A stretch of DNA of 64,000 bases from Lepidodermella squamata (lineage: Eukaryota; Animalia; Gastrotricha), in the NCBI GenBank assembly GCA_047495785.1, contig JBLDXI010000001.1, positions 2,480,001 to 2,544,000 of the forward strand, in the 5' to 3' direction. The position numbers and the translations under genes were made by a program. The stretch's first letter is position 1. Every line of letters begins with the position of its first letter. The notes beneath the pieces were generated by a model, which saw only the letters and a program-made list of their open reading frames with translations, did not search any database and had not been told where the DNA came from. Positions 2,718 to 51,800 of this stretch are shown here, piece by piece.

Positions 2718-3680
2718 GCTGTTAAGGCGGCGTTCTCAAAACAACAATGACCTCATTTTGTGTCATTTTTATTATTATAGCCTATTAATTGTCATTTTTC
2801 TACGCAGTGTTGTGTGAATTGCCGCTTTGCTATAATGTCGTTTTCGATGTATTTCTAAATTAATAAAGCGTCTATATTTCAATAAATAAAATATTGGCTG
2901 TTGATATTCCGACTTAATTAGACTTGATATTCTAACTTGAGGGAAGAAAAAATGTGTGTCCAAAGCTGTTTTTGGAAGTTAATCAGTTTAAATCTTAAAG
3001 TTAATCCAATTCTCCATCTACGACCGCCAACATTTTTTTGTTAACTCAGTTTAGAAGGAAAATCGAGGATGTTCTATTCAGGGTTATGATCGAAGTAAAA
3101 GTGTAATTTTGCCATTTTCGTTACGCATCAATGAACGACCCGATAAGAGGCAAATATTACCTGGCGTTAGCCATACCTAAGACCTACCTGTGATAGAAAA
3201 GATGGCCCGCCAGAATCCCCCATTCAAATGTTTTCAAGTCTCCAAGTTTGCTTTTCTTTTCTTTCGATAGCAACCCTGATTGCGTGGTAATTTTCCTTCA
3301 AGTGATTTTTCACACATTTTTCAACAATTGATTGGATTTTGGATTTTGGATTAAGACAGTGAAAAGTATGCCCAAGTGCGTACCGAGTCTACAACTTAAA
3401 GTTGTTTGTTTGAGCGTAAAACAGCTTGAACTGAGCCAAGCTATACAAAATATGTCAGCCCCCCTGGAAAAGGTAAACACTCGTTCTGTACTTGGAGCAG
3501 CCGATTTTGTCCCATTCCTGTACCTTGAACAATCTGTCGCGTTTACTGTATCGCACCAGAAGGTTTGCTACCTGAGCTAACAATGAAATACTTGAATTAA
3601 AAATTAAAAAAGTCCTCCTTAAAATTTTTCTTAAAATACCAATAATTTTTCCGAGCTTCGGCTATTTGATAAGCCTTTCA

Positions 3681-11827: not shown

Positions 11828-14057
11828 ATGGCATCTCAGGTATTCGATAAAGCTCCCGATATATCCCAAACGAATGTTTTGAGCGATGCCCTCATCAAGT
11901 TGTACGAATCCTCAACTGGCAGCGATGTTGAACTCATTTTGGACAATGGCTCAAAATTGAAAACTCACCGTGCGATATTAGCTGCTCATTCACCTGTTTT
12001 CGCTCGAATGCTGAGCGATCCTAGTTTTAAGGAAGGCCAACTCGGTGTCGTCAAATTACCTGGAAAATCGGCCAAGACCGTGGACGCGTTTTTGCGATAT
12101 TTGTATTCGGGATGCATTTCGCCCCAGAAGCTTGAAGTAACGACTGCTGTCCGAATTTACGCAATGGCTCACGAATATGAGGTACTCCCGCTATATCGAG
12201 CGCTAACTGATACATTCATGCTGGTAATCTATTTCCCAAAACCACATATTTAGTATACAGAAATGATTCTGTAGTTTGGAATGAATGCTAATGCTATCTG
12301 GAGCATTTTTGATGCGGCTATACTTTTCGAGGAGGAAATTTTGGCTGAAGAATGTCGTCAATTTATCTACTACAACGCCCCGGACGCGCTGAAGAGTGAA
12401 TCATTCTGCGATTTGTCAAAATCGGCCCTGCTTGAGGTGATTTCGGACGATTTTCTCTTCGCGCCCGAGGTCAGCATTGCCTTGGCCGTTAGCCGATGGC
12501 AGGAAAAGAATAACGAGGCGAAAATGGAGGAAATCCTCAGTAAGATTCGATACTCGTTAATAAAGCTCGATGGCTTTAATTTGGTTGGTGCAGCTCCGTT
12601 GTATGAAATGCTTGCCGCTCAAAAGATCGACATTAGATCAGTTGGGAAAACGGGATACAACCCGCAGAAGCCAGATTGTTCGAGGAAACAACCAGAATCA
12701 ATAGGTATCTTTTAAGCGTTTACTGTTAAAATATTTTCTAAAATTCGACTCGACTTTCGTTCAGCTTCGAAATCGAATGGAACAGTTGTCGAGGGGGTTG
12801 ACCCGGCAGTTTTGTTTGGCCCGTTTACCGGGTTCGAGGAGCGAGGTAAAGTGGATAGCTACAAGTCGATCGTCATTTCGTTGTCAAAGCCCCACAACGT
12901 CGCCTCTGTCTCGTTTTTCCTGCATTCCTCGGGGGGCAATGCCCCATCTAAATTCTCTATCGATGTCTCCCAGTCGTCTGAGGCGAAGTGGCAAAAAATT
13001 GCCGCCTGCATCCCGGAAGGATCGCCAGCTGGAAAACATGTTGTTATGTTCAAGCGACAGAAGGTATCGATGAGTAAGTTCCCCGCCTCTTTGTCTAAAA
13101 TGATACATGACCGTTAGCAAGTTTGGCATTAACTTTGACATCGTGTGACGTCGCTTTCAAGTTCAATTAGCGGGGAGTCGAACGGTATAAAAAGTTTCAT
13201 AGTCATCAGGGTTGAGAAATTGAGCTTTGAAGCTAAAGGGAGAAAGGAGCAAATTTTGATAAAAATGCGCCTCAAAAAAATTGAGTATTTATTGCCTCAA
13301 TTAATAATCCCCACGCAATGTATGTTATTGTCTTAAGCGCAGTCGACATTAGTAGGGTAATCTGAGGTGAGGCATTTTACTGGATATTCAAAAATGTGGT
13401 TGGAATCGAGCTAATGTTTCCACATCAGCCTAAATTGATGATACACTAAGGGTAATTTGGAGTTTCACATCTTTTGAGGAGGACATGAACTATAGAAAAA
13501 CTGGGTAAGAACATCTTGAAATCCAAGAATCGTTCTTCTTCAAGTAATTAAATTTTAGAGATTTGCTGGAAATTACAGAAAAAGCGCCAACCCCACTTTT
13601 CGGTCACATGAACGGTTTTTTTATTTGGGTATCGCCGCAGTAGTCTTCTTCAGATGGATTAATTGTATCATCTAGAAAAACTTCGGAAGCTAGTTTCCTA
13701 AAATTCAGCCTACCGTGCTAAACAGGCTTAACTAGCTTACATTGCAAGCAGGATTTTTCAAAAGCTTTTTGAACATTTTCGATGAAATATAAAATCAGTC
13801 ATTTGGTTCGTAAAATACCTATCCATGTTTACGATAGTTTCATAGAAATGTTATTATTCATTATTGCAGTTAAAATCACCGCGCAATGTGCAACTGCGTC
13901 GCACAATGGCTATGTCATTCGCGCATTTATTTGCCCGGCACTGAATCTCGAGGCTAGCTATCGCGCTGAATGGATAAGACAATGCCCGGATGGTCAATCA
14001 ATGATTTTCGTTGTCGACAAGGACGGCAAACACATCAAGTCATATCGTTCTGGCTGA
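11828..14057 (+). CDS. BTBD9-like protein, copy D
   Basis: Exons 11828-12223, 12275-~12704, ~12765-13073, 13870-14057; BTB exon nearly identical to copy E. Confidence 0.88.
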
Positions 14058-29241: not shown

Positions 29242-32200
29242 ATGGCTGCGGGGAGTTCACCGATTTTCGCGTTTTTAAGCGTATCAGCGCTACCGTATCT
29301 CGCGCTGGCATTCAACACTGTCGGAAAAAGTAATTGAATTTTCATAATTTAAATGTTAATTTTTTCAATTTTTTCAAAGCTTGCTCTATCGACATAACCT
29401 GCCAGGGTCAAAATGAATATTGCGGCAATATTAGCTGGATGGTAAGAACAGTCAATTGCTTAATAGCCGTCTTCATTTATTAATTATGTTATTATCACAG
29501 CGACCAGTTGGTGTTTGCGACTGCCTACCCCACCATACATCGGGCAATAAATTGATCGAAGGCGGTGCGAAAACGTCCAGTACCGGCCCGCCATCGCCTA
29601 AAACAAACTACCCATGCGTGCCGATTATATTCATGGAACTCGGCGCCGCTTGCGAGGGTGTTTACAGCGAAAAAATCACAGTGTTAAACGCGCATTGCCA
29701 CTTGGACTCCGGCAGGGTCAGGTGCCTGCCCGGTTTCCAGCAGGTCGATAGTCGGCGATGCGTGCAGAATTACCAGCAGGTCCACGAAAGGCGGTACCTG
29801 GGCGAGGGTGCGTCGTGCTCGAAGAATGGCGACTGCGCCGGGGCGATGATCTGTGACGCAATCACCGCAATCTGTCGATGTAGGTTCGGTTTCGAGAAGT
29901 ACAACCCGGCGACCGGGGCTTGCGGCAAGAAAGAACCGGGCGATGCGTGCCGGGAGGACTACGACTGCTTATTCATTTGGTCGGGGCATTCTTTCCGGCC
30001 AGCTTCTTGCATCAATGGGCGATGCTCGTGCCAGGTTAAACTTCGGCCGAAATACGCGACATCAACCAGTCAGAAGAATTTAACAGAAAGCGTCCCGGAT
30101 ACTGTTAGTACCACGCTGGAACCAACTACTGTAACCACCACAGTCGCAACCACTACAGCTATTAGCTCCACCTTAAAATCAACTACTACTACTACGACCC
30201 CTAGGGTGACCACAACATACCCGGCTACGACCTTAAGGCCCAGTACCACTATGGTGCCGGTTAGTACCACACCGGTGCCTACCACTACAGTTGCAGCTTC
30301 AACAACATTTAGTACTACTACCGCTGCTACTACTACGGTTCCAACTTCGACCCCTTTGAGTACTATTACAGCAGCTAGTACCACTCGGTCTTCCCCAACT
30401 TCCACGGCGCGAGTGAGCTCGACGACGTTAGTTAGTACCACAGTGGTACCGAGCACATCGCGAGTACCCAGCTCCACAGTGACTACGACTACCACAGCGG
30501 TTCCGAGCACGTATAGCTCAACAGTGGCTGCGAGTACCACTAGAGCACCTAGTACTACTGTTGCTCCGAGTACCACTAGAATAATCAGTACCACATTGGC
30601 TCCAACTACTACGCGGACCTCCAGTACCACATTGGCTCCAACGACCACCCGGACTACCAGTACCACTACTGTGGCTCCAACTACTGTTACTTCACCGACA
30701 ACGACTAGGGTAGTAACAACTACCGCACGCAATACAGTCACAAGTCCGATAACGACCACCACACGCCCAACTACAACGGCCCGGCCTAGTACCGCTTCAA
30801 CAACAACAACAACAGCCGCAATTACTACCACTACTACTGCTGCTACTACTACAACCCGGCCAACTTCAACAGCGACTTCGACAACGACTCAAAGAATCAG
30901 TACTACCCTCGCGCCAACTACGGTTAGAATTACAACGTCGACAACAGTTGCTACGAGCACGAGCCCGCGGCCTACCACAGCCAGGGTGACCACAATCCGG
31001 CCGACTACAGCAGCAGTAGCACAGGTGGATAGGGCTTCGTGCGGAGATTTTAACGAGTTGACTTGCGGTCCTAATGAGGAGTGTCGTGCGTCACTTTGCG
31101 GACTTCGGCGGTGCCAATGCAGGGCGAAATTCAAGCGAGACGCCGCTGGAAACTGCGCACCAGGTAACACATCGAAACCTTCTTGAGTAGAAAAATAACC
31201 GGAAAATTGTTATTTCCAAGTTGTACAATTGGAGCTGGGGCAATCCTGTAATTCAACGGCTGAGAACGAAATATTACCACCCCATACTACCTGCAGGGAT
31301 TCAGTGGTTACGTGTAATGCGTTTCATAGGGTAAGTCTTAATGTAATTTTCACAATCAACTCTCTTCGATTTGAGCTTTCAAAGTTCCAAAGATAATCCT
31401 AATTCGAAAGTTCTGAACCCTTTGAACCTCTGTTTGAAACACTCAGTTCGTTTATGAAGCTGGATCATTTCTTAAGTTGGATGTTATTTTTAATTTTTGA
31501 AGTTTCGGACATCTCTCATTTCCGCCTTTTCTGCATATTTTTGCAAAATTTTACAACCGGGTAAAATACCGAAAATTACCAATTACCAATGTTTTATTAA
31601 TAAGGTCCTTTAGTCAGATCGTGCCGGGTAAGAATTTCTTGTTTGGATAACTATTCTAGGCGTACCCATTGCAAGGGCCCAAGTTGGGTGCTCAGCTCGC
31701 AACTGAGTGTAGTCCGGTCTACTATAATCGAGTCGCACAAGGCGAATCCATCTCGCAACGTTATTCTGCTGACCAGTCGGAACATTCATCGTCGCCGCAG
31801 GCGTCACAACCACGCCGTAGTAATCGACAAAGCCCAGGTAATAGCGCCCGTAATCGCTCACAAGCGTGATTCCGAGAGTTGAAAAGACATGAGCTCTTTC
31901 AGGCGTGAAATGGAACATATTCTCCGGTAGCAACATCAGGGCCCATCGAACCCCGCCGAATTCAACTGGATCTAAAATCGCGCACCAGGTGGGTCGAACA
32001 TTGCCGCCACTCAGCATCCAATGGGTGTTTAAAAGCTCCTGGTGGGTGTATGCCAACTTGTTCTTCAGCCGAGCTGTGATACGATTAGCTTTTTTAACGA
32101 GTTTTCTATTCAATTCTGGCCTCAGGCCTTCGTCGATTTCTTGGAGTGGTGGCAGCAGATGGACATGCGGTCGGTTGAACGGCCAACCGTAAATGTCGAG

Positions 32201-35200
32201 AATTGAAGACCGATTCGAGAACATTTCCGCTAGGGTTAGATCGTTGAACCTCGTGAATTGCACAACTGCATCCGGGTTTTCATGTTCACCCGGCAGAATG
32301 TTATGCCGGCAGGTGTTGCTCAAGGTTTGCCTCAGTGCTCTTTGAACCACCTCGCCGTATCTTGCCAGGTCGAACACGGGCATTGTAGAGCTGGTTATAG
32401 TTTGACCGGTCTGAAGAGGAGTGACAGCGATTTGAAAGTTGCTGAGCGTTTCGATTCTCGCGAACACCTGTCCGTTACGCAGGCCGGACAGAAAAGAACG
32501 TTCCGAAGCTAACTGACCAAGGCAAGCCGGGTCTTGTGTTGCTGGCTCGCCGAGGTAGGACATTACAACGCGAACGAATTCAAGCAGGCTACTCTCAGTT
32601 GGGAACTTTACGGCGACATTAGCCAGCTGGCGGTGTTCTCCAAGGACCCTGGCTATCAGGAGATCATTCTCTCGACCTCGTGAAATGTCTTGAAAGTAGG
32701 AGTCTCTTGTCAGATTGTATCGCTTATCACCGCGCTGTCTTTGTAGAACAATGTAGCTGTGGTACTGTCCGTTTTTTATTTCGACATTGTAACTAAGTTC
32801 GATGGGCTCATCCAGGCGGCGGCTCTTGCGCACCCAAGCGGTTACCAACACCTGTAATGGGAATTTTGCGATTTTTGCCACTCGCAGCGCTAAGTAAGAC
32901 TTACCCGACGGCCCATTTGGCGTACAGTTTCCATTTCCATTGTGTTTGTTTTTGTTTAATTTTTGGCCTGAGGAAACACATTTTCAATTAGTTTTTCATT
33001 AAGATGGATTTTTTCGTAATTATGTCTTAAAGTGCTCAAACATATTGGATCTGTGTCACCAGTGGAAAACTCAGTTGCCGCATCCAACGGCTTTTTCCTG
33101 GATTCATGGACTTCGGAACCTTCAACTCATGAATGTATGGAACCGCAAGTTAAATTGACCGTAAACAAGTGAAACGCGGGGTTTGGTATATTTTCTGTAT
33201 TTTCCTGCAAATAGCAAAAAGTGTGTTGATTTGAAGAGAGACGATTCTTGGATTCCTAGAAGATCTTACTCAGTTTTTAATTCTTAAGTCTGGGAGGCTC
33301 CCAATCTACCTAACAACTCAAACGGGACACCCAAAAAAGTCGCCGGAAAGGCTTATCGATTTAGGTTGACGCAGAAGTGCTAGCTTGATTGCATCATCAA
33401 GCAAGAAATTTTTGAATTATCCAGGTAGCAAGATTCCTCACCTCAGATTACCCAAAAAACTCGACTGCGCGTGAGAAAATATCATCCGAATTTATTGCGC
33501 GGGTTGGTGTAATAAAAAACTAAATTAACCGCGCATTTTTCGAAATTATAGCCATTTTTACCAGTAAACTTTGCCCACTTTCTCAGCCACCTCTTGATGA
33601 CTATCAACCTCTTTTTTGATGTCGTTCGCCTCCTCGTTCATCGATCTTGAAAGCGGCATCAAAATCTCACGACGTTAAAAATACCCCACTTTTCACTTTT
33701 TAACGGTCAATCGCCCGAAAAAATTTCGCTCTTATTTTTATACGCCAGTCAGTTCGTATTTATTATTTGTTCACTTCCAATGCAAGAGCCCATCTCGTCT
33801 CCCCAGCCGACATCTGCTCCAGATCCACAGTCACCAGTCGAAGCCAACGCGCGTTGTTCTGATCTCGTTTAAAAGTTGGCAACGCCATGATAGCCATTCC
33901 AAAGTACTCGATAGCCCCGGCGAAATTCCCATCCCGTTTCTGCTTAATGGTAATGCCGATTGTGTTGAGAATGCGCACGTCGCTTTGCTGGAAAACAGTC
34001 TCCGGCAGAAAAATCATAGCCCATTCGAGAGGAATTTGCGCGTCGTGCGATTGGAAAATCGCGCACCAGAACAGCTTGACCCTCCCGCCGCTTAAGTATT
34101 CTTCCGAAACTTGCCGTTGAAATTCCGTAAGCCTAGTCAAGTTCTCATCAACCACTCGGCCAGCTGCTGCACAAAGACCGGCGTTATGCCGAGGATCAGT
34201 CGCGGCATTAAGCAGCCTACCCGAAGGTAGCGCGTGAATATGCGGCCTATTGAACGGCCATTGAAACATAGCAGTCATCGGAGCTCGTTCAGCGAACGAT
34301 TGAGCGATGCTCAAAGCGTTGAAGTACGAGAACAGACGCACAGTTTCCGCATCTTCATGCTCGCCAGGTGACACGCCATGCTCGCAGTGGTTCGCCGGGC
34401 CAAAGTTTTGCATCAAAGCTCCATGGATCAACCAGCGGTAGCTTGCCATGTCAAATTCCGGCCTTCGCAAAGGCCTCGCATAATTTTGACCTTCTTGCAT
34501 GTATTCGCCTCTGATTTCGATGTCGTCTCGCCCGACTCGCCTGTACGGCATGCCCTCCATGCCTTCCCTGTACGCCAAGTAGAGCCGTTCGTCAGCTAGA
34601 TGTTGAAGGCAGTTGCGGCTGGCATTCGGCTCGCCTATGTACATCATCACCACTCGGACAAATTCGGACAGGTCTTTATGAGATTTGAAATTCACAACAA
34701 TGTCTCGCAGCTCTGTTTCCGGCCAATGTATTCGTGCTAGCAGCAATTCACGCTTGTTTGGGTCCCTTGCCATCTCTATCCGCATAAAGGAATGCTGGGT
34801 CAGGTTGTTGAATTTTTCATCGCGGCGTCCAAAAGTGAAGAAACGCCGATATTCGCCGTCTTCCAATTCTACATTGTAGCTAAGTGGCGATTTATCGTTC
34901 GGTCCTCGCCTGTTGACTTCTGCCGATACCAATTTCTGTAAAATATAGAGCAATTATCATAAGAATGGTTAAGAATGCAGATTGTTAAACTTACTTGTGG
35001 TTTGAAGCTTTGAAGAGCGTCTGGCAATGGAACTCGATGAGTCATCGCGAGATTGCGAGCAAAGTTTTTGTAAAATGCGCAAATAGTTAATGAATTGCGA
35101 AGTTTGTGTTTTGGTTTTTTCAACGTGCAATTTTAAGGTAGATGTTTTAATTATTAAAATATTATCATCGTTGTGGAACATGTTCCAGCAGTAAAGCTAG

Positions 35201-36675
35201 AAATGTAGCTAGTTGATCATACAACCCCATGAAAACCCGACGGTAACTGGTTCGGAAATAATCGGTATTTTTACCCGGATGTGCCTAATTACCCCGTGCG
35301 TTTCATTCCTGTTGGTATTTCAGCAAAATTGATGCTAATAAAAAAATCTGTACTATTTCACGACAGGAAACCCGAAAAAACCCGTTCGGAATTGTTTGTT
35401 CATTTTCAGCACAGCGTGTCCCAAAAGTAGCGCAAGCAAAGGAAATACAAGGAAAAGGGTTCAGAAAATCTGCAATGAGAGACTCATGGTTAGAAAATGT
35501 TTAGAAAAGCCAAATAATCACGAGAATAGTAATCAATTATGTCTCTTGTTAACGGATTAAAAAAGCCCGGAGAAATTTGGTCCAACCGGGTAAAATACCG
35601 AAAATTACCGAACCAGTTACCATCGGGGTTTTCCGGGGTTTCTGCGGTAAATTTTTCGTTTCTTTGGTTTACTCGCGGATAAAAGATGGAATATTCTCTC
35701 CAATGGGTTTGATTATTATTTTTTAAATTAAGTAGTTGAATTTCCTACAAAAAGTTTTCAAATTAAAAAACAGCTGCGAGACTTCTAGGGCACGCTGTTA
35801 TTTACCTACTGTAACAGGATTTCTTTGAATTTTCTTTTTCTCTCTATCCAATTCAGTATCTTTAAGCATTTTTATATTATTCAAAACACACTCGGGCCAT
35901 AATATTATCGGAAATTGCCCGATTTTTTTTTGTTACTTTCTGGCCCTTTTCTTCGGTTCCATTACTTTGGCACCCTGTTAATCGACAATTAAATTGAAGC
36001 TAATTTTGGACATGATCGTGTGAAAAACTGCTATTTAAGCTAAAACAGTTGGAAATTTATTTGTTTTCTTAGGAAATCGCGGGTTCGTGTGTTCGATTGA
36101 AGCAGGGTGGCTATATGTCGAAATGCAGCGCTTCAATGAGATGTTTATCATCTAACGAAACCGAAGCCGAAAATAAACGCCTATGGTGCGACTCTGAGAC
36201 GAAAACATGCCGATGCTACGGCTATTTGACTTCGAAATGGAACGAAGAAACCGACAGCTGTGAACGCCGCGAATTTGGCGATTCTTGCTCAACAAACGAC
36301 GACTGCGGATCTTTCGGGTCGCTATCAAACGGCGGATACACATATGGCGGCGGTTTTTGCTACCGAAAATCAAAAGATGAAGAAGGGAAATGCGGTTGCG
36401 CGCCTGATTTCGAGGCAACCCGATTCAGCTATGCCGAGAAAAATACCGGCGAAATCAGAACGAAAACGATTTGCGTTCATAATTCGACGATTTTGAACGT
36501 CCAGCCAGGTGAACGCTGCACCCTTGACCCAATTTTCCACGGCGACAGTCGATTAGGCTGGACTCGGGTGTGTAAAAGCGATTCGATATGCCTGAGGTGT
36601 GGTAATGAAATCGGCTTAGAATTTATTCGAAAACGCGAAGGCTTTTGTGTTGAGATCTCGTCTATAACAGGATGA
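29242..36675 (+). CDS. Secreted Cys-rich EB-module-like protein with a Thr-rich mucin stalk (paralog 2)
   Basis: Signal MAAGSSPIFAFLSVSALPYLALA; conserved intron positions; ~300-aa PTS region 30070-31020; phase-0 intron 31331-36072 joins to last exon 36073-36675. Confidence 0.82.
31610..32940 (-). CDS. Unknown ~425-aa protein, nested antisense gene 1
   Basis: Exon 1 32940-32905 (MEMETVRQMGRR|GTAAGT), exon 2 32851-31610; AATAAA just downstream (31593-31598); paralog of 33763-35045. Confidence 0.85.
33763..35045 (-). CDS. Unknown ~407-aa protein, nested antisense gene 2
   Basis: Exon 1 35045-34995 (MTHRVPLPDALQSFKPQ|GTAAGT), exon 2 34935-33763; AATAAA overlaps the stop; same phase-0 intron position as gene 1. 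Confidence 0.85.
35410..35700 (+). repeat. Dispersed repeat family A (Tc1/mariner-like start ACAG(C/A)GTGTCCC)
   Basis: Shared core AAAGGGTTCAGAAA..ATGAGAGAC..CCAACCGGGTAAAATACCGAAAATTACCGAACCAGTTA; other copies at 38175-38677(-), 49843-50068(+); partial copies at 31554-31580(+) and 35232-35278(-). Confidence 0.8.
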
Positions 36676-37210
36676 AAATAATTTGCTTCAATTATATAAT
36701 ATAATTTTTTCTGGCCCCGATCTTGGAAAAATAAAAATGTTGTTATTATTTATGTTTATGCGAGTGCGAATCGGTGTGGTGGCGCGTTGATCGATTGTTG
36801 ACGTCGTTTTTGTAGCCACCTTAAAATATTGTATTAAGACGCGGAGAAAATATATATATAGCGGCGTGTGATATTAGCTTAAACCGAACGCGCTACGCGA
36901 CACTTTCTTTTTGCGCGCGCGCGAGACGGTGTTGAACATCAATAACAACACAAAGCAAGCGTAATGACTTGGCACGCGCGCGCTTTTTCTATTACCGTTT
37001 ATTAATGACAATCGAATGCGAGAGCGAGCGCGCGCGCTTTTTTCCGATGACAAACATCACCGAGCCGAGAGCGAAAATTGACGATGGCAATGATGATGAC
37101 GTTGATGATGAAACGTGTGTTTTTCTTTCTTCCTCCGCTGATGGCGTCAACAAAATTTTAGATTTCTTATTCTTTACTCGTTATAATATGCTGTGATAGC
37201 CCTGTGTACA

Positions 37211-40200
37211 ATGCTCACGTCTGCAATTCAACTCTGCAATCTGTGTTATCTGTTACTCATACTGTTCCACGCGGCAAGTGCGGCTAATACCGTTGGAACT
37301 GGTTTGTTTTACGTTTTCTTGTTTAAACAAATAATGTTCTGAATTGTTACCTTTCTGTTAGCTTGTACTTCAAATTCAACCTGCACTGGACGCAACGAGT
37401 TTTGCCAGGAACTTACTTGGCTGGTAAGGATTGCTTTGACCTAGTTCCATTTCCGAGTCATTTTTTATTTTTATTAGGAACCAAAATGTAGCTCGGGGAT
37501 GTGCCAGTGTCTGCCTTGTTACACGACCGGCGACTTTACAGGCTATTCATGGACTGATAATCCTTGTGCACCAGGTATGCATTTTCCAACCTCAATTCAA
37601 TCATTTTTTACAAATTGGGTACATTACCTACTAATCACACTTAAAAATAATGGAGCAGATGAAAAGTTTTATCGTTTAACCTCAATCCTCAATTTTGATA
37701 TTTTGCATTCGTATTTTTCGGAAAATATTTCAGACAGAAATCGAACAGTAAATCATCATCGACCCCACCAAAATGTTCGATCCCCTGATTTTATTGCAGA
37801 TTCGAATTCAGCGCATCGATTTAGGGTACCATATCTTGCCGTTTTTAAACTAAAATTTCAATGTCAGTTGGGCAAAACGTAAATTGACAAATTGTTGACC
37901 TGGTTTCGGGGACAATTTGTTTTTCGAAAATTATGAACCTTTCGAACTCTGCTGGCGATCACTCTAATTGGGTTGGGCTTTTAGCTTGTAAAATCCCCTC
38001 AATTTGGGCCCTATGAGTAACCTAATTCACCGATTTTCAAAGTTCCTCTGAATTCATGCCGGGAAAACGTAATAAAAAACCCACCCTATATAACTCATCA
38101 TCTGAATTCATGCTTTCGGTCGTAGGTGCGTGTTGTAGGAAATTCAACTAATTTTTTAAAATTTCACCTACCGATAGAACATTCCATCTTTTATCCGCGA
38201 TTAAACCAAAGAAATAACAAAATTTCGGGAGAAAACCCGGAAATCCCCGATGGTAACTGGTTCGGTAATTTTCGGTTTTTTACCTGGTTGGCACAAATTT
38301 CTCCGGACTTTTTCGATCCCATTAACAAGAGACTTAATTAATTTCTATTCTCGTAAAAAAAAGTCTTTCTGGCCATGAGGTGTGACTTGGTCTCTCATTT
38401 CAAAGTTTCTGAACCCTTTTCTCTTTATTTTCTTCAGGGTGGCCAAAAAGAGCCACAGGGGGCGAAGTTGATTGATTGGAACGCGCATTAGCTTAGTGAG
38501 GAGCTTTAAGAAGTTGAAGCATTTCAAGCATTCTTTGCCCAATTTCTTCAACTCTTCTCTTCAATTTCATAAAACTCCTCATTTAATTGATGCGTACTCC
38601 AATCAATGAACTTCGCCCCCTACGGCACTTTTTGGCCACCCTGCGTATGCTTGCGTTAATCATGGGACACTCTGTATAAGAGTTTCGCTGATTCAAGTTC
38701 AATTGTTTGATTTTGCTTAATTTCACATTTAAATTTTTCAAAAATATTTGTCGCAATTAAAAAATTATGATAATTTATCCGATTTGATGCATTATGCTTA
38801 ATTTGTGAATATAGTTATTCAATTAAATATCGGCGATGCATGCGAGGGTGTCTACAACGAGCAGTACCTTGTCCGCGGTTCCGGCTGCGTTGACGGCATC
38901 GTCGCGTGCGAACTCCGCGACCACATCGTCGTCGGCTCGGCATGCATGCGCCGCGGCCGCAATCTAGGCGAGGGCGCGCCCTGCAAAACAACGGCTGACT
39001 GCGCCGGCAATATGTGGTGCGGCGTCGGCTACACCTGCGAATGCTACTACGGCTACGAGCGATACGACCCAATTTTCAATAGATGCGTGAAAAAGGACAT
39101 TGGCAGTCCTTGCATTTCTGACGATGATTGCAAGGTATAACAAATTTTCCATTAATTTTTCAGAAATTTTTTGAATTTTTTCTCAAGGTGTCTGCAAGGA
39201 ATTGGGACGGTTTTACGTGGAGTTCGGCGGAATGTGTTAAAAATCAATGCGAGTGTGGGGCTAATAATGTTAAAACGGAGGCGACCTATATCGACGGGCT
39301 GACCGGGTTGTCCCAAACTAGGTCAATTTGCGTGGCCGGTGGGGCGATGGTCAACGCATCCTTGGAGCAAAGTTGCCAAATCGATCCGGTCTACTACGGC
39401 GATAGCGATGAAGTGACCGTGTGCTCGAGTGATTTCGTCTGTGCCGCTTGCCCAACCGATGAATTTTCGAGCTTGGGAAAATGTCGCAGGGTGGTGGGGC
39501 AAATGCCGGTCAGCCATAACTGCCCTAAATTAATTGCGAATAAAGCGGCTCAAACTTCGAAAATTCCAACCACAAACATCGAAACAACAACGCCATCGGC
39601 TACCCAAGCTCCGACTACAACTGGAAATCCTCCAGGTAACTTGAATTAATTGTAAATTCATAAAAAAAAATCAAATAATTGAAAAAATAATGAATTTAAA
39701 TTATATTTGGTATCTACATCGATTCCAAGTATCGATTTAAAAAATCAGTGATTTTCCGATATTAGAATAAGCCAGCTTTATTTTCCTTGAGCCAATGGTA
39801 CCAGCTAGCTAAATAAAAAATGAAAATTAGAGAGTCATTATCGCGGGCATCATTATCGCGATAGAGAAAATAAAAGGTTGAAATAATAAAGAATCGGAAA
39901 AATTGGGTTAGGATGCGAAAATTTAGTGCTGGAAACTGTTTGACCCATTTCTATTATTTAATGATTTATCATAACTAATTAGTACCAATTAATTACTTAT
40001 ACCTAATTAATATTTTATTAGAGGCTCAAAGCGTCGAAATTAACCTGGAGACCGTCCCTCCGCTCTACGTTTACTCGGTCAAAAACAAAATCGAACCCAA
40101 TCTGTCGGTTTCTCGAAATGTGGCTCGAAAATCGATACTCAAAATCGACCATCAGCAACCGATTTTCGCCATAAGCTCAGTCGGTCGAGCTTGCCAATCG

Positions 40201-42020
40201 AATGAATCATGCCTCGGACCGAACGAGTACTGCCATAACGTGACCTGGGTATCCCCGATGTGCCCTATGTCTATGTGCCAATGCCTGCCCTTCTTCACAA
40301 ACGGCGTTTTCACGCCTGGTCTGGCCACAAATGACGAAAATATCTGCGAACCAGTAACCTTACTCAATATTGGCGAAAATTGCACAGGAGCTTATTACGA
40401 ATATATTATGGCTAAAAACGCGGAATGTTCGAAAGGTCGAGTCACGTGCCTACCCGGGTTCGACCAGTTGGACTCGCAGGGTGACTGCGTTGTGTCGAAA
40501 TACGGCAAGTTAGGATCAGGAGCCGCGTGCCGTGACTCATCGCAATGCCGCGGCAGTTTGATCTGCAACCCAGATCAATTCTGTGAATGCCCGTTTTCGC
40601 ATCAAAAATTTGACCCGGATTTGGGTGACTGCACAACTAAAACCCTGGGTGACTCATGCATGGACAGCGGATCCTGCCCGTTAGGCCTTGTCTGCTTCGA
40701 CGGCGAGTGCGGATGTGGCCCGAATCGAATCGCAATCGCTTCGGTTGAAATTCATCCAATGACTGGGAAACTGGAGAATAAAACGGCTTGCTACCCGTTC
40801 GGGACAAATACAGTGGTTTTGAGGCCGGGTGAGAGTTGCGAAACGTTACCTATGTTGAATACTGGGATCGATAATTCAGAGGTTCGAGTTTGCGGGTTCG
40901 AATCCGTCTGCTTCTCCTGCCCGACTGAATCCTCCTTAAAAGATGAACAATGCCGTAAGTTACTTGGAAAATTCTCATTTTTTGTGATTTATTATGAATT
41001 TCAGGGAAAATTACCAGTTCTATCCCTGAACCAGCTTGGCTAATGAAACCAGTATCAGCTATTCCTTATCTCAGCAGCAGCTCCGAAACTGTACCAGTCA
41101 GCACTGAAGAACCCTATAGCATTACTTCCGAAGAAATCGTGTCAAAAACCCCGCTTCAAGCTATAACTTCTAGTCTCGATTCCGAGCCAGCAAATGGCGA
41201 GTGTTCAGCCGACCTGGATTGCCGGAGGCCGAATCAAATCTGCTCTTGGTCCTTCTGCGGCATGAAATGTACCTGTAAAGACGGGTTCATATTGGCTAAC
41301 AACGCCTGCCTACCGATAAAACAGCTGAATTTGGACGATAAATGCAATTCAAGCTCACTGAATGAGAAACTACCGCCTCATACTGTTTGTTTGAATTCAA
41401 AAGTTTCGTGTAATCCTTACTTTTACCGGAGAGGCTCGGGTGATTCATGCACACCCATCACCCGGGGCGCCTATGGGTCACCCTGTAGTGTCACCCAGAT
41501 GTCATACTGCATCAGGGGTGATCAAAACGACCCGACTCAATCGTTATGGTGCGATCCTAGGTCGAAAACTTGCGGCTGCTACGAATCATCCGCCTTAAAA
41601 TGGGACACATCTCAGGATCGCTGCATCAAACGCGAATATGGCGATTCATGCGTGGCGGACAGCGATTGCGCGGTATATGGCGATTTAGCAACAGGCGGCT
41701 ATACGTACGGCGGTGGGGCCTGCCTAGGCGGCCGGTGTGATTGTGCGATGAAATTTATTAAGGCGAACTTCAGTTATATCGATGCAGCAGCGACCAATAA
41801 GGTGCGCACAAAAACGATATGCGTGCACAAATCATCGAAGTTGAACCGCGAACCTGGCAAGCCGTGTCACGTCGACCCGATCTATTTCAGCGACAACCCG
41901 CTCGGCCAACTCGCCATTTGCCGGCCCGGTGATGTTTGCGTGAGATGCGACGGCGATCCGGCGATTGACAATCTACCCCTTCGAATGGGTGTCTGCGCGC
42001 CTGGAGTGCGGCCGAGTTGA
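37211..42020 (+). CDS. Secreted multi-module Cys-rich EB-like protein (paralog 3)
   Basis: Signal MLTSAIQLCNLCYLLLILFHAASA; several tandem Cys modules ending KTICV..C.(I/V)DP.Y; canonical splice sites. Confidence 0.82.
38435..38643. mobile_element. 209-bp MITE nested in a family A copy
   Basis: ~46-bp TIRs CAGGGTGGCCAAAAAG(A/T)GCC..AGGGGGCGAAGTT.ATTGATTGGA; no clean TSD. Confidence 0.8.
39716..39820 (+). repeat. Dispersed repeat family B
   Basis: Core ATCGAT..AAATCAGTGATTTT(T)CC..AT and ATGGTACC; copies at 11712-11760(-), 51612-51670(-), 56990-57150(+), 59981-60130(+). Confidence 0.72.
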
Positions 42021-44145: not shown

Positions 44146-46279
44146 ATGGAAAAGCTCCGGTTTCTAATATTCACAGCCGCCTGTTTTCACCTATCATTGA
44201 GTCATAGCAATAGAAATTCTGTCGGAAAGCGTAAGATGGAATTTTCAGTAATTGCGAAGTTGTCCGAACTTTTAATTCACAGCTTGCGATTCTAATTCGA
44301 CGTGCACTGGATCTAATGAATTTTGCAATCACGTGTCATGGGTGGTAAGGAAATTATTTGTATTCAGAATATTTTTAGGAAATTTTCTTTTTTAGAGCCC
44401 GAGCTGTTCACCCAGAGGAATTTGCCGGTGCTTGCCATGCTATACCACTGGCGATTATTCTGGATATTCTTGGGGCGCCTTGAGTTCCTTGCCCTGCCAG
44501 CAAAGTAAGATTAACTATGAGAGAAAAAACAATTAATAAGTATATAGTTGATAATTTATATTTTATTTATTTATTATAATTATAATTTTTATTTTATTAA
44601 ACATTTATAATTAATTTAATGCTGATTTATGAACTATTTTTCCGTAAATCTAAAATATCTCTATTTTTCCAGTTTCTATTCTGAATTACGGTGACCCCTG
44701 TTTGGGTGTCTACTACGAAAAATACCCGTCTCGCAACGCTGAGTGCATCCGCGGCGTAGTCGACTGTTTACCCGGGAAAAAATGCCTCGGCCGAAATACC
44801 ACCAACTCAACAAACACCAAGCCATGGGGCGGCAGTTGCTTCCAGAACTCGGACTGCTCCGGAGAAATGGTATGTATCAACCAGAAATGCTCTTGCTTCA
44901 ACGTCTACGAACGCTACGACCCACCCGCTGGGATTTGCGTGAAACGAGAATTGGGTGACTCGTGTTTATCGGACGATGACTGCAAGGTGTCTGGCCGGCA
45001 CTGGAACGGCTTCACGTGGGACAGTGCCGTTTGCCTAAAAGGCAAATGCCGATGCGAGTTCAGAGAAACGCGGGCTAGTTACATTGACGCCGAAACCGGG
45101 CTATTCCGCACTAAAACAATTTGTGTCACCCTAAATGGCGCGACTGGGGTGAATCAAAGCCAGGAGTGCAATGTCGACCCGGTTTACTACAGTGATACTA
45201 CTCTACTAAGGAGCTGCCATGAAGATTTCGTCTGTATTTCATGCCCGAATGATTTCAACGGCGACTGGTCGCGGGGAAGGTGTCGGAAGTTGAATGACAC
45301 CCAGGCGGCTCAACAGGGTGTCTGCACTAATTCTACACGGCCCATCTTGCCCCGATACGATTGGCAAATATCAATGAGTTCAACCACCCAGGTTCCGATT
45401 ACTACTACGACGAGAGCTCCGATCACCCTGCCGAACCCAGGGGTGACTACAGCATCACCCTTAGGTGGCCCTAGATCGTGCCAAAACACCTCAAATTGTG
45501 GCACAAATCAGCAATGTATTTGGTCACCCTGTTCTCAAAAAAGCTGCCAATGTAAAGATGGCTATGAAAATTTCCCAAATTGTCAACCTATGAGAATGTT
45601 GGAAATTGGCGAATATTGCGATTTTAAGACGCCTAATTTAGAAAAACGGCTACCTCCCCACGCGATTTGTTTGAACAATACCGTTAATTGCAACCCGATT
45701 TACTACTACCGAATCGGTACTCGATGCGTTAAAATCGATCAGGGCAGTTACGGGTCGAAATGCGGGTCCCGTAGCCCTTGCCTCGGCGAGAAAATCCAGG
45801 AAAATCAGTTATGGTGCGATGAAATCAGCTATACATGCCGATGTTACGAATCGGTTGCTATGAAATGGAATTCAGACGCGGATCGGTGTGAAAAACGCGA
45901 ATTTGGCGATCAGTGTTCGACAAATGACGACTGCGCTGTATCTGGGTCAATTGCCGAGGGCGGTTACACATACGGCGGCGGAATTTGTTCGCAAAACAAA
46001 CGCTGCGAATGTGACTTGAATCGATTTATCGCTGTTAATTTCACGTATTACCACCCTGTTACCACGCGTTTAATGACTAAACCGATTTGTGTGCATAAAT
46101 CAGCGAAATTGAGCGTCGCGACAGGTCAACCGTGCATGCTTGACCCGATTCGGTTCGCTAATAACCCTCTAGGTCAGGTCGGTATCTGCCAACCGGGGAA
46201 TATTTGCCTCCGGTGTGATGGCACTGATGCCGTCAAATTTCTGCCGAAAATTCAAGGTATTTGCGTCGATTACCGATAA
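44146..46279 (+). CDS. Secreted Cys-rich EB-like protein (paralog 4)
   Basis: Signal MEKLRFLIFTAACFHLSLS; three short exons then a 1.6-kb exon (~44673-46279) with two module sets. Confidence 0.85.
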
Positions 46280-46676: not shown

Positions 46677-48789
46677 ATGCGGATTTTAGTGGGATTTCTG
46701 GTTATTCCGTTTTTCATCGAATTTTCCAGTCAGAGCACTGTTGGTTTGGGTAAATTAAAATAAAAAAATATTCCCGATTTTTTTATTATTTTATGATAAT
46801 TTTAGAGTGCTATTCGAATTCGACGTGTTATGGGGAAAATGAATTTTGCCAAAAAATTGCAATCCAGGTAATTTTTTTCGCTTTGTTAATTTAATTTTTT
46901 ATTAATTTTATGAATTCTAGCAACGAAGTGGTAGCATCGGGCTTTGTCGTTGTTCACCCGGTTTTACCACAGACGAAACAAAAAGCGAACCATGCACCCC
47001 TGTAATTAACCTAGAAGTCGGCGATTATTGCTACGACACCTATGATGAATTTATTCGAACTTCGAACGCATTTTGCGACGGAATTGCCAGCCGCGTAGTT
47101 TGCTTACCTGGTTATACCCATGTGAAGGACAAAAATCCTTCGATATTCAGTGCCGATAAATGCTTTCGAGAGAATGCCGGATTAGGCGCTGTGTGTAAAT
47201 CAAGCCTTGATTGCGAGGGTGACCTATGGTGCTCGGATCGTTTTACCTGCCAATGCGATAAAGGTACATTTTTCTGAATTTTTTATCAAATTTTATCGAT
47301 TTTTTTGCTAGGTCTGATATTCGATGAAACAACTGGTAAATGCTATAAACGGCGATATGGCGACCCTTGCCGATCAGACTTCGACTGTCCTGATTTCGAA
47401 CAATCCGCCTTAATTCAACCGTTTGAATGTCGCAATGGTACATGCCAATGCCGTAGTCAAGACGTGAAAATCGAGGTCTCCTATTTCGAACAGAGTTGTA
47501 GCAGAATTTTAACCGAACCTATGTGCCTTATTGATTGGGCGACGAAAATTGGCAAGCAATTCGACGTGAGTCAAAGTGAGATGGACGTCGGGGAGATTCT
47601 ACAGATTTTAAAGCCGCAATTTCTAAATCCGATCTGCCCTGAGCATAAAACCGAATTATCAGCAGATTCAGCTACGCCTGACAGTGGGGTTGAAGAAATA
47701 GGTGCAGGGTATTTCAACCGAACTTGTATGGACGCGTTGGATTGCTTTAAGAACGAAGAGTGTGTATCGTGGTCACCCTGCGCTCGAATCAAGTTCTGCT
47801 CGTGTAAACCGGGCTATTTTCGAAATCGTGCAAATCAAGGTCTTTGTGAAATACCGAAGGAGAAATTACAGCTTGGAGACAAGTGCAGTGTTGCGGAGGA
47901 AGGGAATCTCCAGCTGCACATGACCTGTGTGGACTCGAAAGTGCAATGCCATCCTATGTACAAGGTAAGGATTTCCTTTTTCCTTTCCTTTCCTTTCCTT
48001 TCCTTTCCTTTCCTTTCCTTTCCTTTCCTTTCCTTTCCTTTCCTTTCCTTTCCTTTCCTTTCCTTTCCTTTCCTTTCCTTTCCTTTCCTTTCCTTTCCTT
48101 TCCTTTCCTTTCCTTTCCTTTCCTTTCCTTTCCTTTCCTTTCCTTTCCTTTCCTTTCCTTTCCTTTCCTTTCCTTTCCTTTCCTTTCCTTTCCTTTCCTT
48201 TCCTTTCCTTTCCTTTCCTTTCCAATTTAATATATAGATTCAAATTACATAAGTTTCCCCTACTTTTTTCAAGCAATTTGGGGGATCGTGTAAGGTACCC
48301 TCCACCGGATTTTATGGCTCATCCTGCAGCTTGTCCCAACCCTGCCTCGCAACGAGAGTCGAAGATCCTCACAGGCGGCTATGGTGCGACCAAGGCCGGG
48401 CAAAATGTCGCTGCTATGAATCATCAGCCATGAAATGGGACGAAACCCTAGATCGATGTACCTACCGCGATTATGGCGATCCGTGCGAAAGGGATGACGA
48501 TTGCGCCGGGTTCGGCTCTTTAGAAAAAGGTGGATACACCTACGGCGGTGGCTGGTGCGATCCTTCGACTTCGACATGCTCTTGTTGGCCAGCTAAATTC
48601 CGCTCCGTCCCTATCACTTACTTCGATTACAACTCATCGAAGCTAGTGATGAATAAAACTATTTGCGTGCATAAATCGGCGAAATTGAGAGTCGGAATTG
48701 GAGAGCCGTGCACGTTGGACCCGATCGAACGAGGCGATAATCCGTTAGGGATGACGCGAGTCTGCCAGCGTTGGATTAGTTTGGATTAG
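46677..48789 (+). CDS. Secreted Cys-rich EB-like protein (paralog 5a), C-terminally truncated
   Basis: Signal MRILVGFLVIPFFIEFSSQS (in-frame upstream ATG at 46641); last module stops at TRVCQRWISLD*, lacking the final Cys residues seen in paralogs. Confidence 0.72.
47979..48223. repeat. (TTTCC)49 perfect microsatellite
   Basis: Uninterrupted 5-mer array filling intron 47965-48273. Confidence 0.98.
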
Positions 48790-48867: not shown

Positions 48868-51800
48868 GAAACACCTTGTCAGAAAGGCCTTTGTGCCTGT
48901 TTGCCTGGATACGTTTTGGATGGCGTGAAATGTACCAAAAGTAATTTTGCCATTATTTTTTGTGAGAATTTACATGCACTTTTAAGTTTCAATGGGGTCA
49001 ATCCCATCCAATTATCTTGAAAATATTCTCTAGGCATATTCAAATTGTTTAATTGAGCCGACCAATGATCATTAGTGAATCGGGCGTTATTACACATGTA
49101 ATCACATTGGGCTCAGTTTCGGGTTCTGGGCCCCCATCTCGCCAATCCGGTTTTTCCTCGACACCATTCTAGGCGAAGGCCCTCTGCCTGAGTCCCGCGA
49201 CCGACCGCCGTCGATCCCGTCCTTTGAGGCGTGACCATGGTCAAAATTTGATAAGAAGTCCGGTCAAGAAGAGTTTCGAAATATAGCTAAATAATATAAT
49301 ATAATATAGGCCTTGATGTAAATAATTAATCATCAATTTTTCTGCCAGTGTTGCACTTACGCCATTATGCACCCCGCAATTAGCGGGAATTTCGGCGCGC
49401 CGAATATATTTTTTTGCGACATTTAGATGTACACGAATCATCGTTATTTGTGGTTTACCCTCGGGTATTCGAATATTTTCACTTCCCAATAAAGATGCTC
49501 GTTCCTCTCTCTCTCCCGCTCTCACTCTGCTACCAGTCGGGGTCTCAAAAGGAGACCCACCGCGGCCTAAGCCGCTAAATCTATAAAAAAATAAGTATAA
49601 AAGATTTAAGGCCAAATCCTATGTATCAATTTCTGAGTCAAAGAATCGATATTATTCTTCATTTTTCAGAAGTTTTAATCAGCAATCTTGGCGATGCGTG
49701 TGACATTCAACATTTCGGCCAGTACTACGGCGTATCAAATGCCGACTGTTACGGCTCGGTTGTAGCGTGCAACCCAGGCTACTACCAACGCGGAAACAAC
49801 TCATGCATGGCCGAGGTAAGATTCCTAATTTTCCAGGATTAAATACAGCGTTTCCTATAATTAACGCAAGCAAAGAAAAAATACACGGAAAAGGGTTCAG
49901 AAACTCTAAAATGAGAGACCAAGTCACATCTCATGGCCAGAAAAATGTAGAAAAATTAAAAAAATTCACGAGAATTATAATCAAGCATTTTACTTGTTAA
50001 TGGGTTTAAAAAAGTCCGGAAAATTTGGTCCAACCGGGTAAAATACCGAAAATTACCGAACCAGTTATTATCGCTGTTAAAATATTGCTGTCAATATCCA
50101 ATATCCACTATACTTGATATAGGTATCATGTGCCGATAACCGGTTATGCCCGGGCGGCATGTATTGCGACACCCGGCAGCGGTGTTCGTGTTACTACGAC
50201 AAAAAGTTTGACCTAGTTACGCAGACATGCATCAAACGCGAGTACGGCGATGCGTGCCGGCGCGATACCGATTGCCAGGTTCAGGGCCGCGACTTCAACG
50301 GCTTCACCTTTCGATCGGCCATTTGCGTCGAGGGGTCTTGCGTTTGCGGCGATTTCGGCCAGGCTGCTGTTGCGACTTACATCGATCGAGCGACGAATGC
50401 GTACAAAACTAAAACGATTTGCGTATCATCTACAGCGACAATTAATGCTACTCAGGGTACTACATGTACTTTGGACCCGGTTTGCTTATCTAACCAAAAA
50501 AATCGAATTTTTTGTAAATCCGTTTTTACCAGGTTTATTGGTCAGATATCGCTGATACTGTAGTTTGTGAGCCGTCCCATATTTGTTACCAGTGCCCGGT
50601 AAAAAAAATTAAAATTTTGATTAAAATTCGAAAAGAATTAATAATTTTAGGAAGACTATCAATATCCCGATTACGGCAAAAATTTCTTCGGAAAATGCAG
50701 TGAGTTGAATTATAAAAAATTAAAAAATTTATCCACCTCAAATTTGTAGGAAAAATTAAGCGTGACAATGACTCATCGACTACTACTACTACGACAACTA
50801 CAACATCGACTACACCTCAACCACCTGTTGTTGAGAATGAAACAGCTCCGAATCTTCATTTACCGACTCCTAAAGTTGACGTTGTTATTGACTATGTTAC
50901 AAGTGAGAAGAAACGAGAGACGCATCGGCCTTCGACTCGGTCTTCGACACTTTCGACTCATAAAACGACCCAGTTGGATGCTTCTACGAAGCGATGGGTG
51001 ATTGTTACCATGCCAGGTGATCCGGGTAATTATAATGGAGGCGAAGAATCGACTGATGAATCTACAAGCGCTGCTACTACTAAAGTATTTAGGGTGGGTA
51101 GAAATATTTTCATTTAATTTTTATGTCTGCGATTTATTATACAATTTATTAGGACGACTCTGGCAAGCAAGCTTCGACAAATTTCCCGCCTATGTTAATC
51201 CGAGAAACTTGCAAGCTACCGCGGGTTGCCAACGGCCATTTCTACGCGTCGACTATGAATGGAACTTGGGTTCTAGTTTCCGGTTACGATTCGGTCCTAC
51301 CCGGTACCCATGTCAGTCTCAGCTGCGAATCGGGCCTGGCGCCCAGTGGAGGATCCACCAAAAGCGTTTGCTTGCTAAATGGCTTGTGGTCAGATATTTT
51401 CGGCCGATGCTACATGCCTACAACATCCACAAGTATGCTAAAAAAATTTCAGAAATATATAGAAAATATAGAGGAACCATATTCTAAGGGTCCAAATAAT
51501 TTTTCGTAGTTTGATCGATTATGCCCCCTTCCCCCTGAACCTAGAATTTTTTATTTCAGGGTCGCCCTAAGCTGCGAAGAAAAATGACCGATGGGTTCCA
51601 AGGCGGCAAATATTGAAAAAATCCCTGATTAGTAGAACCGATACTTGGAATCGATATCGGCTCTGCAGGCTGAAGTATAATTTGCAAACTGACAGCTTAC
51701 AGTGCAAAATACGAGTAATGTGAAGATCTATTGGCTAGGCATGATAGGAACAAAATTTAGATTCTAGGCATGAAATTCTAAAAAACATTTTTAGAGGAAA

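Follow-up and report, generated by a model that had tools for sequence, protein, structure and literature searches.

The 64,000-nucleotide stretch analysed here (the window; positions 2,480,001 to 2,544,000 of contig JBLDXI010000001.1, assembly GCA_047495785.1) comes from the gastrotrich Lepidodermella squamata, and all coordinates below are positions in it. On its minus strand lie two neighbouring protein-coding genes, gene A (31610-32940) and gene B (33763-35045), which with their polyadenylation signals span 31593-35045 and fall wholly inside the predicted intron 31331-36072 of a gene on the opposite strand (Table 1). The favoured reading is that a taxon-restricted protein-coding gene was duplicated in tandem long ago and that both copies lie antisense in the enlarged intron of an EB-module/mucin-like host, the repeats around them being independent insertions. 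The probability of this reading is put at about 70%.

Genes A and B have an identical architecture of a short first exon, a small phase-0 intron and an AATAAA signal of their own, and their predicted products are 425 amino acids (A) and 407 amino acids (B) long. Minus-strand open reading frames (ORFs) are present at 31610-32881 and 33763-34953, but the first ten residues of these raw frames, including a seemingly invariant L-Q, are translated intron (polypyrimidine tract and CAG) and not protein. The introns sit at the same aligned position (V/LVTAWV in A and K/LVSAEV in B, the slash marking the intron). Over their full length the proteins are 34% identical with 54% positives (BLASTP, E 9e-65), and their synonymous sites are saturated, with a proportion of synonymous differences (pS) of 0.70 vs 0.42 for non-synonymous ones (pN), so that no usable dN/dS value can be given for the pair. 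This saturation points to an old duplication of which both copies have been kept. Within the window, tblastn found no further copies of the pair. The first-pass annotation of this DNA had described two tandem minus-strand genes of these lengths, both beginning with a short exon, interrupted by a phase-0 intron at one shared position and ending in a polyA signal, and with sequence blocks in common from end to end. The gene models agree with that description, and all of the blocks listed are present in the A-B alignment.

Table 1. Features at the locus, in window coordinates; the introns of A and B, the host intron and the host exons are read from the sequence. X1 and X2 are the two public runs described in the text.
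Feature	Position	Strand	Details
Host exons flanking the intron	31222-31330; 36073 to stop codon 36673-36675	+	
Host intron	31331-36072	+	4,742 nt; GTAAGT at 31331, TTAG ending 36072; phase 0, matching frames
Gene A, exon 1	32905-32940	-	ATG and 11 codons (12 in total), ending exactly at the GTAAGT donor
Gene A, intron	32852-32904	-	53 nt; GTAAGT...ACAG; phase 0
Gene A, exon 2	31610-32851	-	413 codons and stop; open frame, paralogy to B, X2 variants, X1 contigs at 100% identity
Gene A, AATAAA	31593-31598	-	12 nt past the stop codon
Gene B, exon 1	34995-35045	-	ATG and 16 codons (17 in total), GTAAGT donor
Gene B, intron	34936-34994	-	59 nt; GTAAGT...ACAG; phase 0
Gene B, exon 2	33763-34935	-	390 codons and stop; open frame, paralogy, X1 contigs at 34219-34368, X1 depth at 34629-34819
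Gene B, AATAAA	33759-33764	-	Overlaps the stop codon
Solo terminal-inverted-repeat fragment of a miniature inverted-repeat transposable element (MITE)	31546 to 31580-31590	+	35-45 nt; right-arm orientation, outer end toward gene A
Complete, self-contained MITE upstream of gene B	35223-35640	.	418 nt; arms 35223-35271/35592-35640 (49 nt, 84%)
Related MITE-family copies	38233-38434; 49845-50073		Family total of four loci in the window
Second inverted-repeat-bounded repeat, between A and B	33154-33711	.	29-nt arms 33154-33182/33683-33711, 86% complementary

Evidence that these frames are maintained as genes comes from two public sequencing runs that hold the region, both compared over 31000-36700: X2, which is DNA-like, and X1, which is probably RNA (a guess). 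The X2 run covers the whole region at a word depth of ~60-130, with the gene bodies at the same depth as the unique flanks. Because its contigs include window-identical sequences as well as sequences ~2.5% different, X2 holds a second haplotype or strain, pointing to an individual of high heterozygosity or to a genome present in two divergent copies. The identical and the ~2.5%-different contigs occur at similar depth, about 45-67 each. Among the X2 differences listed, gene A carries 16 synonymous vs 5 non-synonymous changes which, over 302 synonymous and 967 non-synonymous sites, gives a pN/pS of about 0.1 (binomial p = 6e-7). In exon 1 of gene B the listed positions yield two synonymous variants and one non-synonymous variant (derived by hand). 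All 12 of the 12 indels listed fall outside both coding regions (chance ~0.001), and a 2-nt insertion of the second haplotype falls in the intron of gene A, not in its coding sequence. Gene A is thus shown to be kept by purifying selection, as had been proposed for the family at the outset, and gene B, for which the listed differences are few and the signal is weak, probably is too.

The X1 contigs are 100% identical to the window in gene A and near-identical in gene B. They cover nine of the 13 coding bins vs none of the six unique non-coding bins (p = 0.008), and X1 contains 35% of the sampled words of gene A vs 14% for the 4.3 kb (31400-35700) in which both genes lie. Both genes therefore appear to be transcribed. 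The possibility that they are chance ORFs or decaying pseudogenes would fit the lack of homologues and of a spliced transcript among the data seen, but not two intact frames of ~400 codons whose motifs are kept at 34% identity with pS well in excess of pN, nor the synonymous excess and indel avoidance between haplotypes, nor X1 coverage restricted to exons, and it is extremely improbable.

The host gene has a mucin-like exon rich in proline, threonine and serine (PTS) with an EB module (PF01683, E 3e-7), followed by the small exon that precedes the large intron. When the joined flanking exons were used in a tblastn search, the paralogues at 41322-42002 and 45596-46270 were continuous across the junction, and the paralogue at 47863-47964 / 48265-48768 had a gap of ~300 nt there. 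This is in line with the earlier observation that the 4.7-kb intron is short in one paralogue and lacking in others. The two genes, the MITE insertions and the second repeat would together account for the size of the intron. The host is one of at least eight Cys-rich paralogues arrayed in tandem on the plus strand (27384-50482), which have in common a C-terminal domain of ~200 amino acids with the motifs GGYTYGGG, KTICV and C.LDP and no Pfam match. In addition to this domain the host copy has the EB module and ~350 amino acids of mucin-like, PTS-rich sequence, and across the array one intron position carries an intron of 4.7 kb, one of ~300 nt, or none.

An exact 16-mer of the repeat motif occurs at 31557, 35586 and 50034 (three copies vs 0.04 expected by chance), and an inverted copy near 35262-35278, which has one extra A relative to the 16-mer, is the left arm of the element 35223-35640. 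This element has a second inverted arm pair (35269-35303/35561-35595, 35 nt) inside its outer arms. The solo fragment beside gene A is identical over 27 nt to 35583-35609, the alignment extending to ~40 nt with a 5-nt deletion, and no homology to the MITE interior lies alongside it. The fragment begins 3 nt beyond the gene A AATAAA (window 31546-31598), so that transcripts of this gene are probably cleaved inside transposon-derived sequence. Inverted repeats on either side of the genes, as reported in the first-pass annotation, do exist, but they are not paired brackets, the right one being an arm of a complete MITE and the left one a 35-45-nt fragment. That annotation had also raised the prospect that 35232-35631 is simply an independent MITE, and this is how the sequence is now understood, as 35223-35640 has its own paired arms.

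In keeping with MITEs in general, the 418-nt element ends in long inverted repeats, encodes nothing and is present in very many copies. The X2 depth of its arm is 8,600-65,000 vs ~70 for unique DNA, with the right arm (35554-35637) at ~65,000. As points of difference, the genes lie beside the elements and not inside them, and the left-hand piece amounts to no more than part of a single arm. The MITE terminal inverted repeat forms an 84-nt unit at 35554-35637 that is also found at 38236-38319 and 50003-50073. Its word depth of ~65,000 in X2 corresponds to on the order of a thousand copies, and no contigs are recruited at 90% identity by the left arm (35223-35303), which has diverged too far. 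The second repeat, between A and B, has an X2 depth of 600-3,300 over 33101-33864 and a related diverged copy at 13146-13601, inside a BTB gene array. Many internal deletion variants of it are present among the X2 contigs.

These features bear directly on the idea, put forward with the original description, that the genes are transposon cargo brought in as a block in a composite element with the CCGGGTAAAATACCGA repeats at its ends. Repeat pieces do lie within ~20 nt of the 3' end of gene A and ~180 nt upstream of the gene B ATG, and the homologous intron is short or missing in the host paralogues. However, because the left fragment and the MITE left arm both point their outer ends at the genes, which is the reverse of an arrangement of terminal repeat, cargo and terminal repeat, the genes are outside both elements. 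The right repeat is an entire MITE with its own arms and the left repeat is a solo fragment, and the other MITE-family pieces in the window adjoin no further copy of the gene pair. Genes A and B are at single-copy depth in X2 (~60-130) while the MITE arm reaches ~65,000. Moreover, there is no transposase, and the MITE's own ends show no target-site duplication, the block ends not having been searched. A composite transposon would be expected to have outward-facing ends and to be repeated as a unit together with them; neither was found, going by arm orientation, X2 depth and the tblastn search of the window. Delivery of the genes by the flanking repeats is abandoned here as highly improbable.

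Two tightly linked lineage-specific genes of unassigned function could also be taken for a selfish two-gene module similar to those of Caenorhabditis. A toxin-antidote element combines a parent-loaded toxin with a zygotic antidote, causes transmission distortion and usually shows presence/absence or a hyperdivergent haplotype. In published accounts (for example 10.1101/2020.08.06.240564 and PMC13411925), such elements are described as usually made of novel genes, and the Caenorhabditis-type pairs are presented as one toxin with a distinct antidote. Genes A and B share with nematode toxin-antidote elements (peel-1/zeel-1, sup-35/pha-1, slow-1/grow-1 and others) the adjacency of two lineage-specific genes, but unlike a toxin and a separate antidote they are paralogous to one another and have their motifs in common. 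Moreover, no presence/absence polymorphism was seen in X2, where the second haplotype or strain carries the block at normal depth and none of the joints listed bypasses it, and gene A is under ordinary purifying selection. A selfish module finds no support in this analysis and is about as improbable as the cargo explanation.

Searches of Pfam with the whole proteins and with three pieces of each gave nothing significant, nor did NCBIfam, PHROGs or PADLOC. A word-indexed search of 5.8 billion clusters returned 0 homologues, an exhaustive search of 1.84 billion protein representatives with an HMMER profile gave 0 hits at E up to 0.001, and scanning metagenome, viral and prokaryote contigs with back-translated patterns found 0 related loci. 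A profile search of PDB sequences gave no significant match. The pair is a taxonomically restricted (orphan) protein family in that no homologue was found by sensitive search, and the earlier statement that no known family could be recognised holds across all sequence, profile and contig searches. A match of B to the cupin 3-HAO in Pfam (E 0.055-0.08) was set aside as chance, the matching stretch being without His and having no counterpart in A. An Rfam scan of the window gave nothing, and a bacterial promoter/terminator scan and a tandem-repeat search were uninformative.

Horizontal acquisition from a virus or bacterium would explain why the pair was not found among all eukaryotic proteins searched, and the G+C of the pair is slightly above the window average. 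On the other hand, there was no match in the 1.84 billion representatives, viral contigs, metagenomes, prokaryote genomes, PHROGs, PADLOC or NCBIfam, and each gene carries a spliceosomal intron and an AATAAA signal. The G+C content at third codon positions (GC3) of both genes is within the range of neighbouring genes, and the codon-usage correlation of B is typical (0.54). That of A is lower, at 0.29 vs 0.48-0.70 for the neighbours. As a test of foreign origin, GC3 and codon usage of the two genes gave no clear foreign signal, and a viral or bacterial source is exceedingly improbable.

The sole match in the PDB profile search, below threshold, was to HDAC6, at its active-site stretch, and raises the question of whether A and B are strongly degenerate proteins of the histone-deacetylase/arginase fold, either pseudo-enzymes or divergent deacylases. 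The resemblance to class I/II histone deacetylases (PF00850) is local: PG.H, twelve residues, FN and a following small-hydrophobic A..A helix, as in RPPGHHA...GFC.FN..A.A, have identical spacing in A, B and both HDAC6 catalytic domains. The match has an E value of 0.17-0.58 over the entire chain, or 2.2 over the stretch that aligns, covers 49 residues and includes no deacetylase other than HDAC6. Furthermore, PF00850 was not matched up to E 10 by the whole proteins or their central pieces. Histone deacetylases are recognised by the tandem His of PGHHA, the D.H zinc ligands in D.D.HHG.G, the catalytic Tyr in GGY and the spacing to the later motif. In A and B the tandem His is replaced by E-H (PGEHE), the D.D.HHG.G motif is missing, LSGG is followed by N or R in place of the tyrosine, and the distance from the second motif to SGG falls ~75 residues short of what the fold requires. 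With a sub-threshold match and every hallmark of the family failing, membership was rejected; the likeness to HDAC6 would be a chance or convergent local resemblance, and true homology is very unlikely.

Neither A nor B has a signal peptide or a membrane segment (maximum 19-residue Kyte-Doolittle hydropathy 1.27), and the products would be soluble intracellular proteins. A three-part layout is suggested, with a beta-rich N-terminus ending in the conserved helix EFVRVVM.Y.GEP, a central part with the invariant C.H...PGEHE and WPFNRPH.H followed by a variable long helix, and a Trp-rich beta C-terminus with LSGG.V..WCAI, WA...LPE, ARW.RLV and WALA. The two AlphaFold models, of unusable confidence (predicted local distance difference test, pLDDT, 32-35), agree solely on N-terminal beta hairpins, the helix EFVRVVM, a helical middle with a long variable helix and a beta-rich C-terminal third; they predict four to six strands and then a helix. 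Searches of the ESM-Atlas with whole A returned PH-clan families in 9 of the 10 best family-bearing hits, at low scores of 0.53-0.64. The N-terminus of B returned no PH family there, and no PH family was matched in Pfam. A PH-like domain is a seven-stranded beta sandwich with a helix at its C-terminal end as a cap, and the PH/RanBD-like N-terminus suggested in the first-pass annotation would be a tentative candidate. A search with the central and C-terminal part found only unnamed phage or bacterial clusters (0.46-0.54). An internal duplication of the N- and C-terminal beta parts was considered and dismissed (hhalign probability 0.5%).

All three cysteines of protein A, four histidines, both glutamates of PGEHE and five tryptophans are invariant between A and B; in the ORF numbering of A the Cys, His and Glu positions are C120, C191, H193, H200, H239, H241, C300, E199 and E201. 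Because all three cysteines of A and four histidines are unchanged at only 34% identity, a Zn or Fe centre in the central region, catalytic or structural, is tentatively proposed as the likeliest mode of action, which makes the Cys/His metal site suggested in the first-pass annotation plausible. A more doubtful extension of this proposal is that the pair founds a family of new structure whose intracellular members are either metal-dependent enzymes or adaptors stabilised by metal, with a centre formed by C.H...PGEHE and WPFNRPH.H. Such a family would be confined to a poorly sampled invertebrate lineage, for which the EB module would suggest a nematode-like animal. A role of the two diverged copies as linked antagonists is less likely.

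Several points weigh against this overall picture of an expressed, constrained and lineage-restricted gene pair. X1 is only guessed to be RNA, and its contigs are short, carry no strand information and contain no splice junction, so that the first exons are predictions from the sequence. The X2 differences listed are 40 of 170, and in exon 2 of gene B the listed ones amount to two synonymous and four non-synonymous changes, a weak signal of constraint. AlphaFold2 run on the two-sequence alignment produced no confident fold (pLDDT 34.5 and 32.3), and the domain scheme and metal site are drawn from low-confidence secondary structure and conservation alone. The reach of the searches is also a concern. 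A neighbouring Cys-rich paralogue likewise has no homologue in the word-indexed search, although its sister gene, the host, carries a Pfam EB module. Similarly, a conserved PI-PLC exon retrieved only vertebrate fragments of 33-35% identity. As these calibration searches show, the protein database has no close relative of the source organism in the accessible length range. Because the Cys-rich paralogue finds nothing and the PI-PLC exon finds only such fragments, the lineage is considered to be poorly sampled, and the orphan status of the pair is softened accordingly. The family may be shared with unsampled relatives, in which case "orphan" would describe a poorly sampled clade and not necessarily one species. 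The exons of the PI-PLC gene (X, Y and C2 domains) lie at 1210-2717 on the plus strand.

Taxon-restricted nested gene pairs are common in invertebrate genomes. Genes A and B resemble such orphan families and nested intronic genes in having no homologue outside the lineage, in being tandem duplicates placed wholly in an intron of the opposite strand, and in lying in a region rich in lineage-specific expansions (the BTB, F-box/ankyrin and EB-module arrays of the window). They differ in being unusually long and well structured (>400 amino acids with many invariant Trp, Cys and His) and in that their duplication appears ancient, yet both copies were retained.

To summarize, the analysis separates a real signal, namely two long, constrained and apparently expressed orphan proteins with a Cys/His/Glu signature, from an incorrect story of transposon cargo. 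The host paralogues offer a clean local example of intron growth, from ~300 nt to 4.7 kb, by means of genes and MITEs. Should the complete genome or sister species turn out to encode further members, an alignment of greater depth would open both the fold and the putative metal site to direct testing, and a new fold or class of enzyme might emerge.

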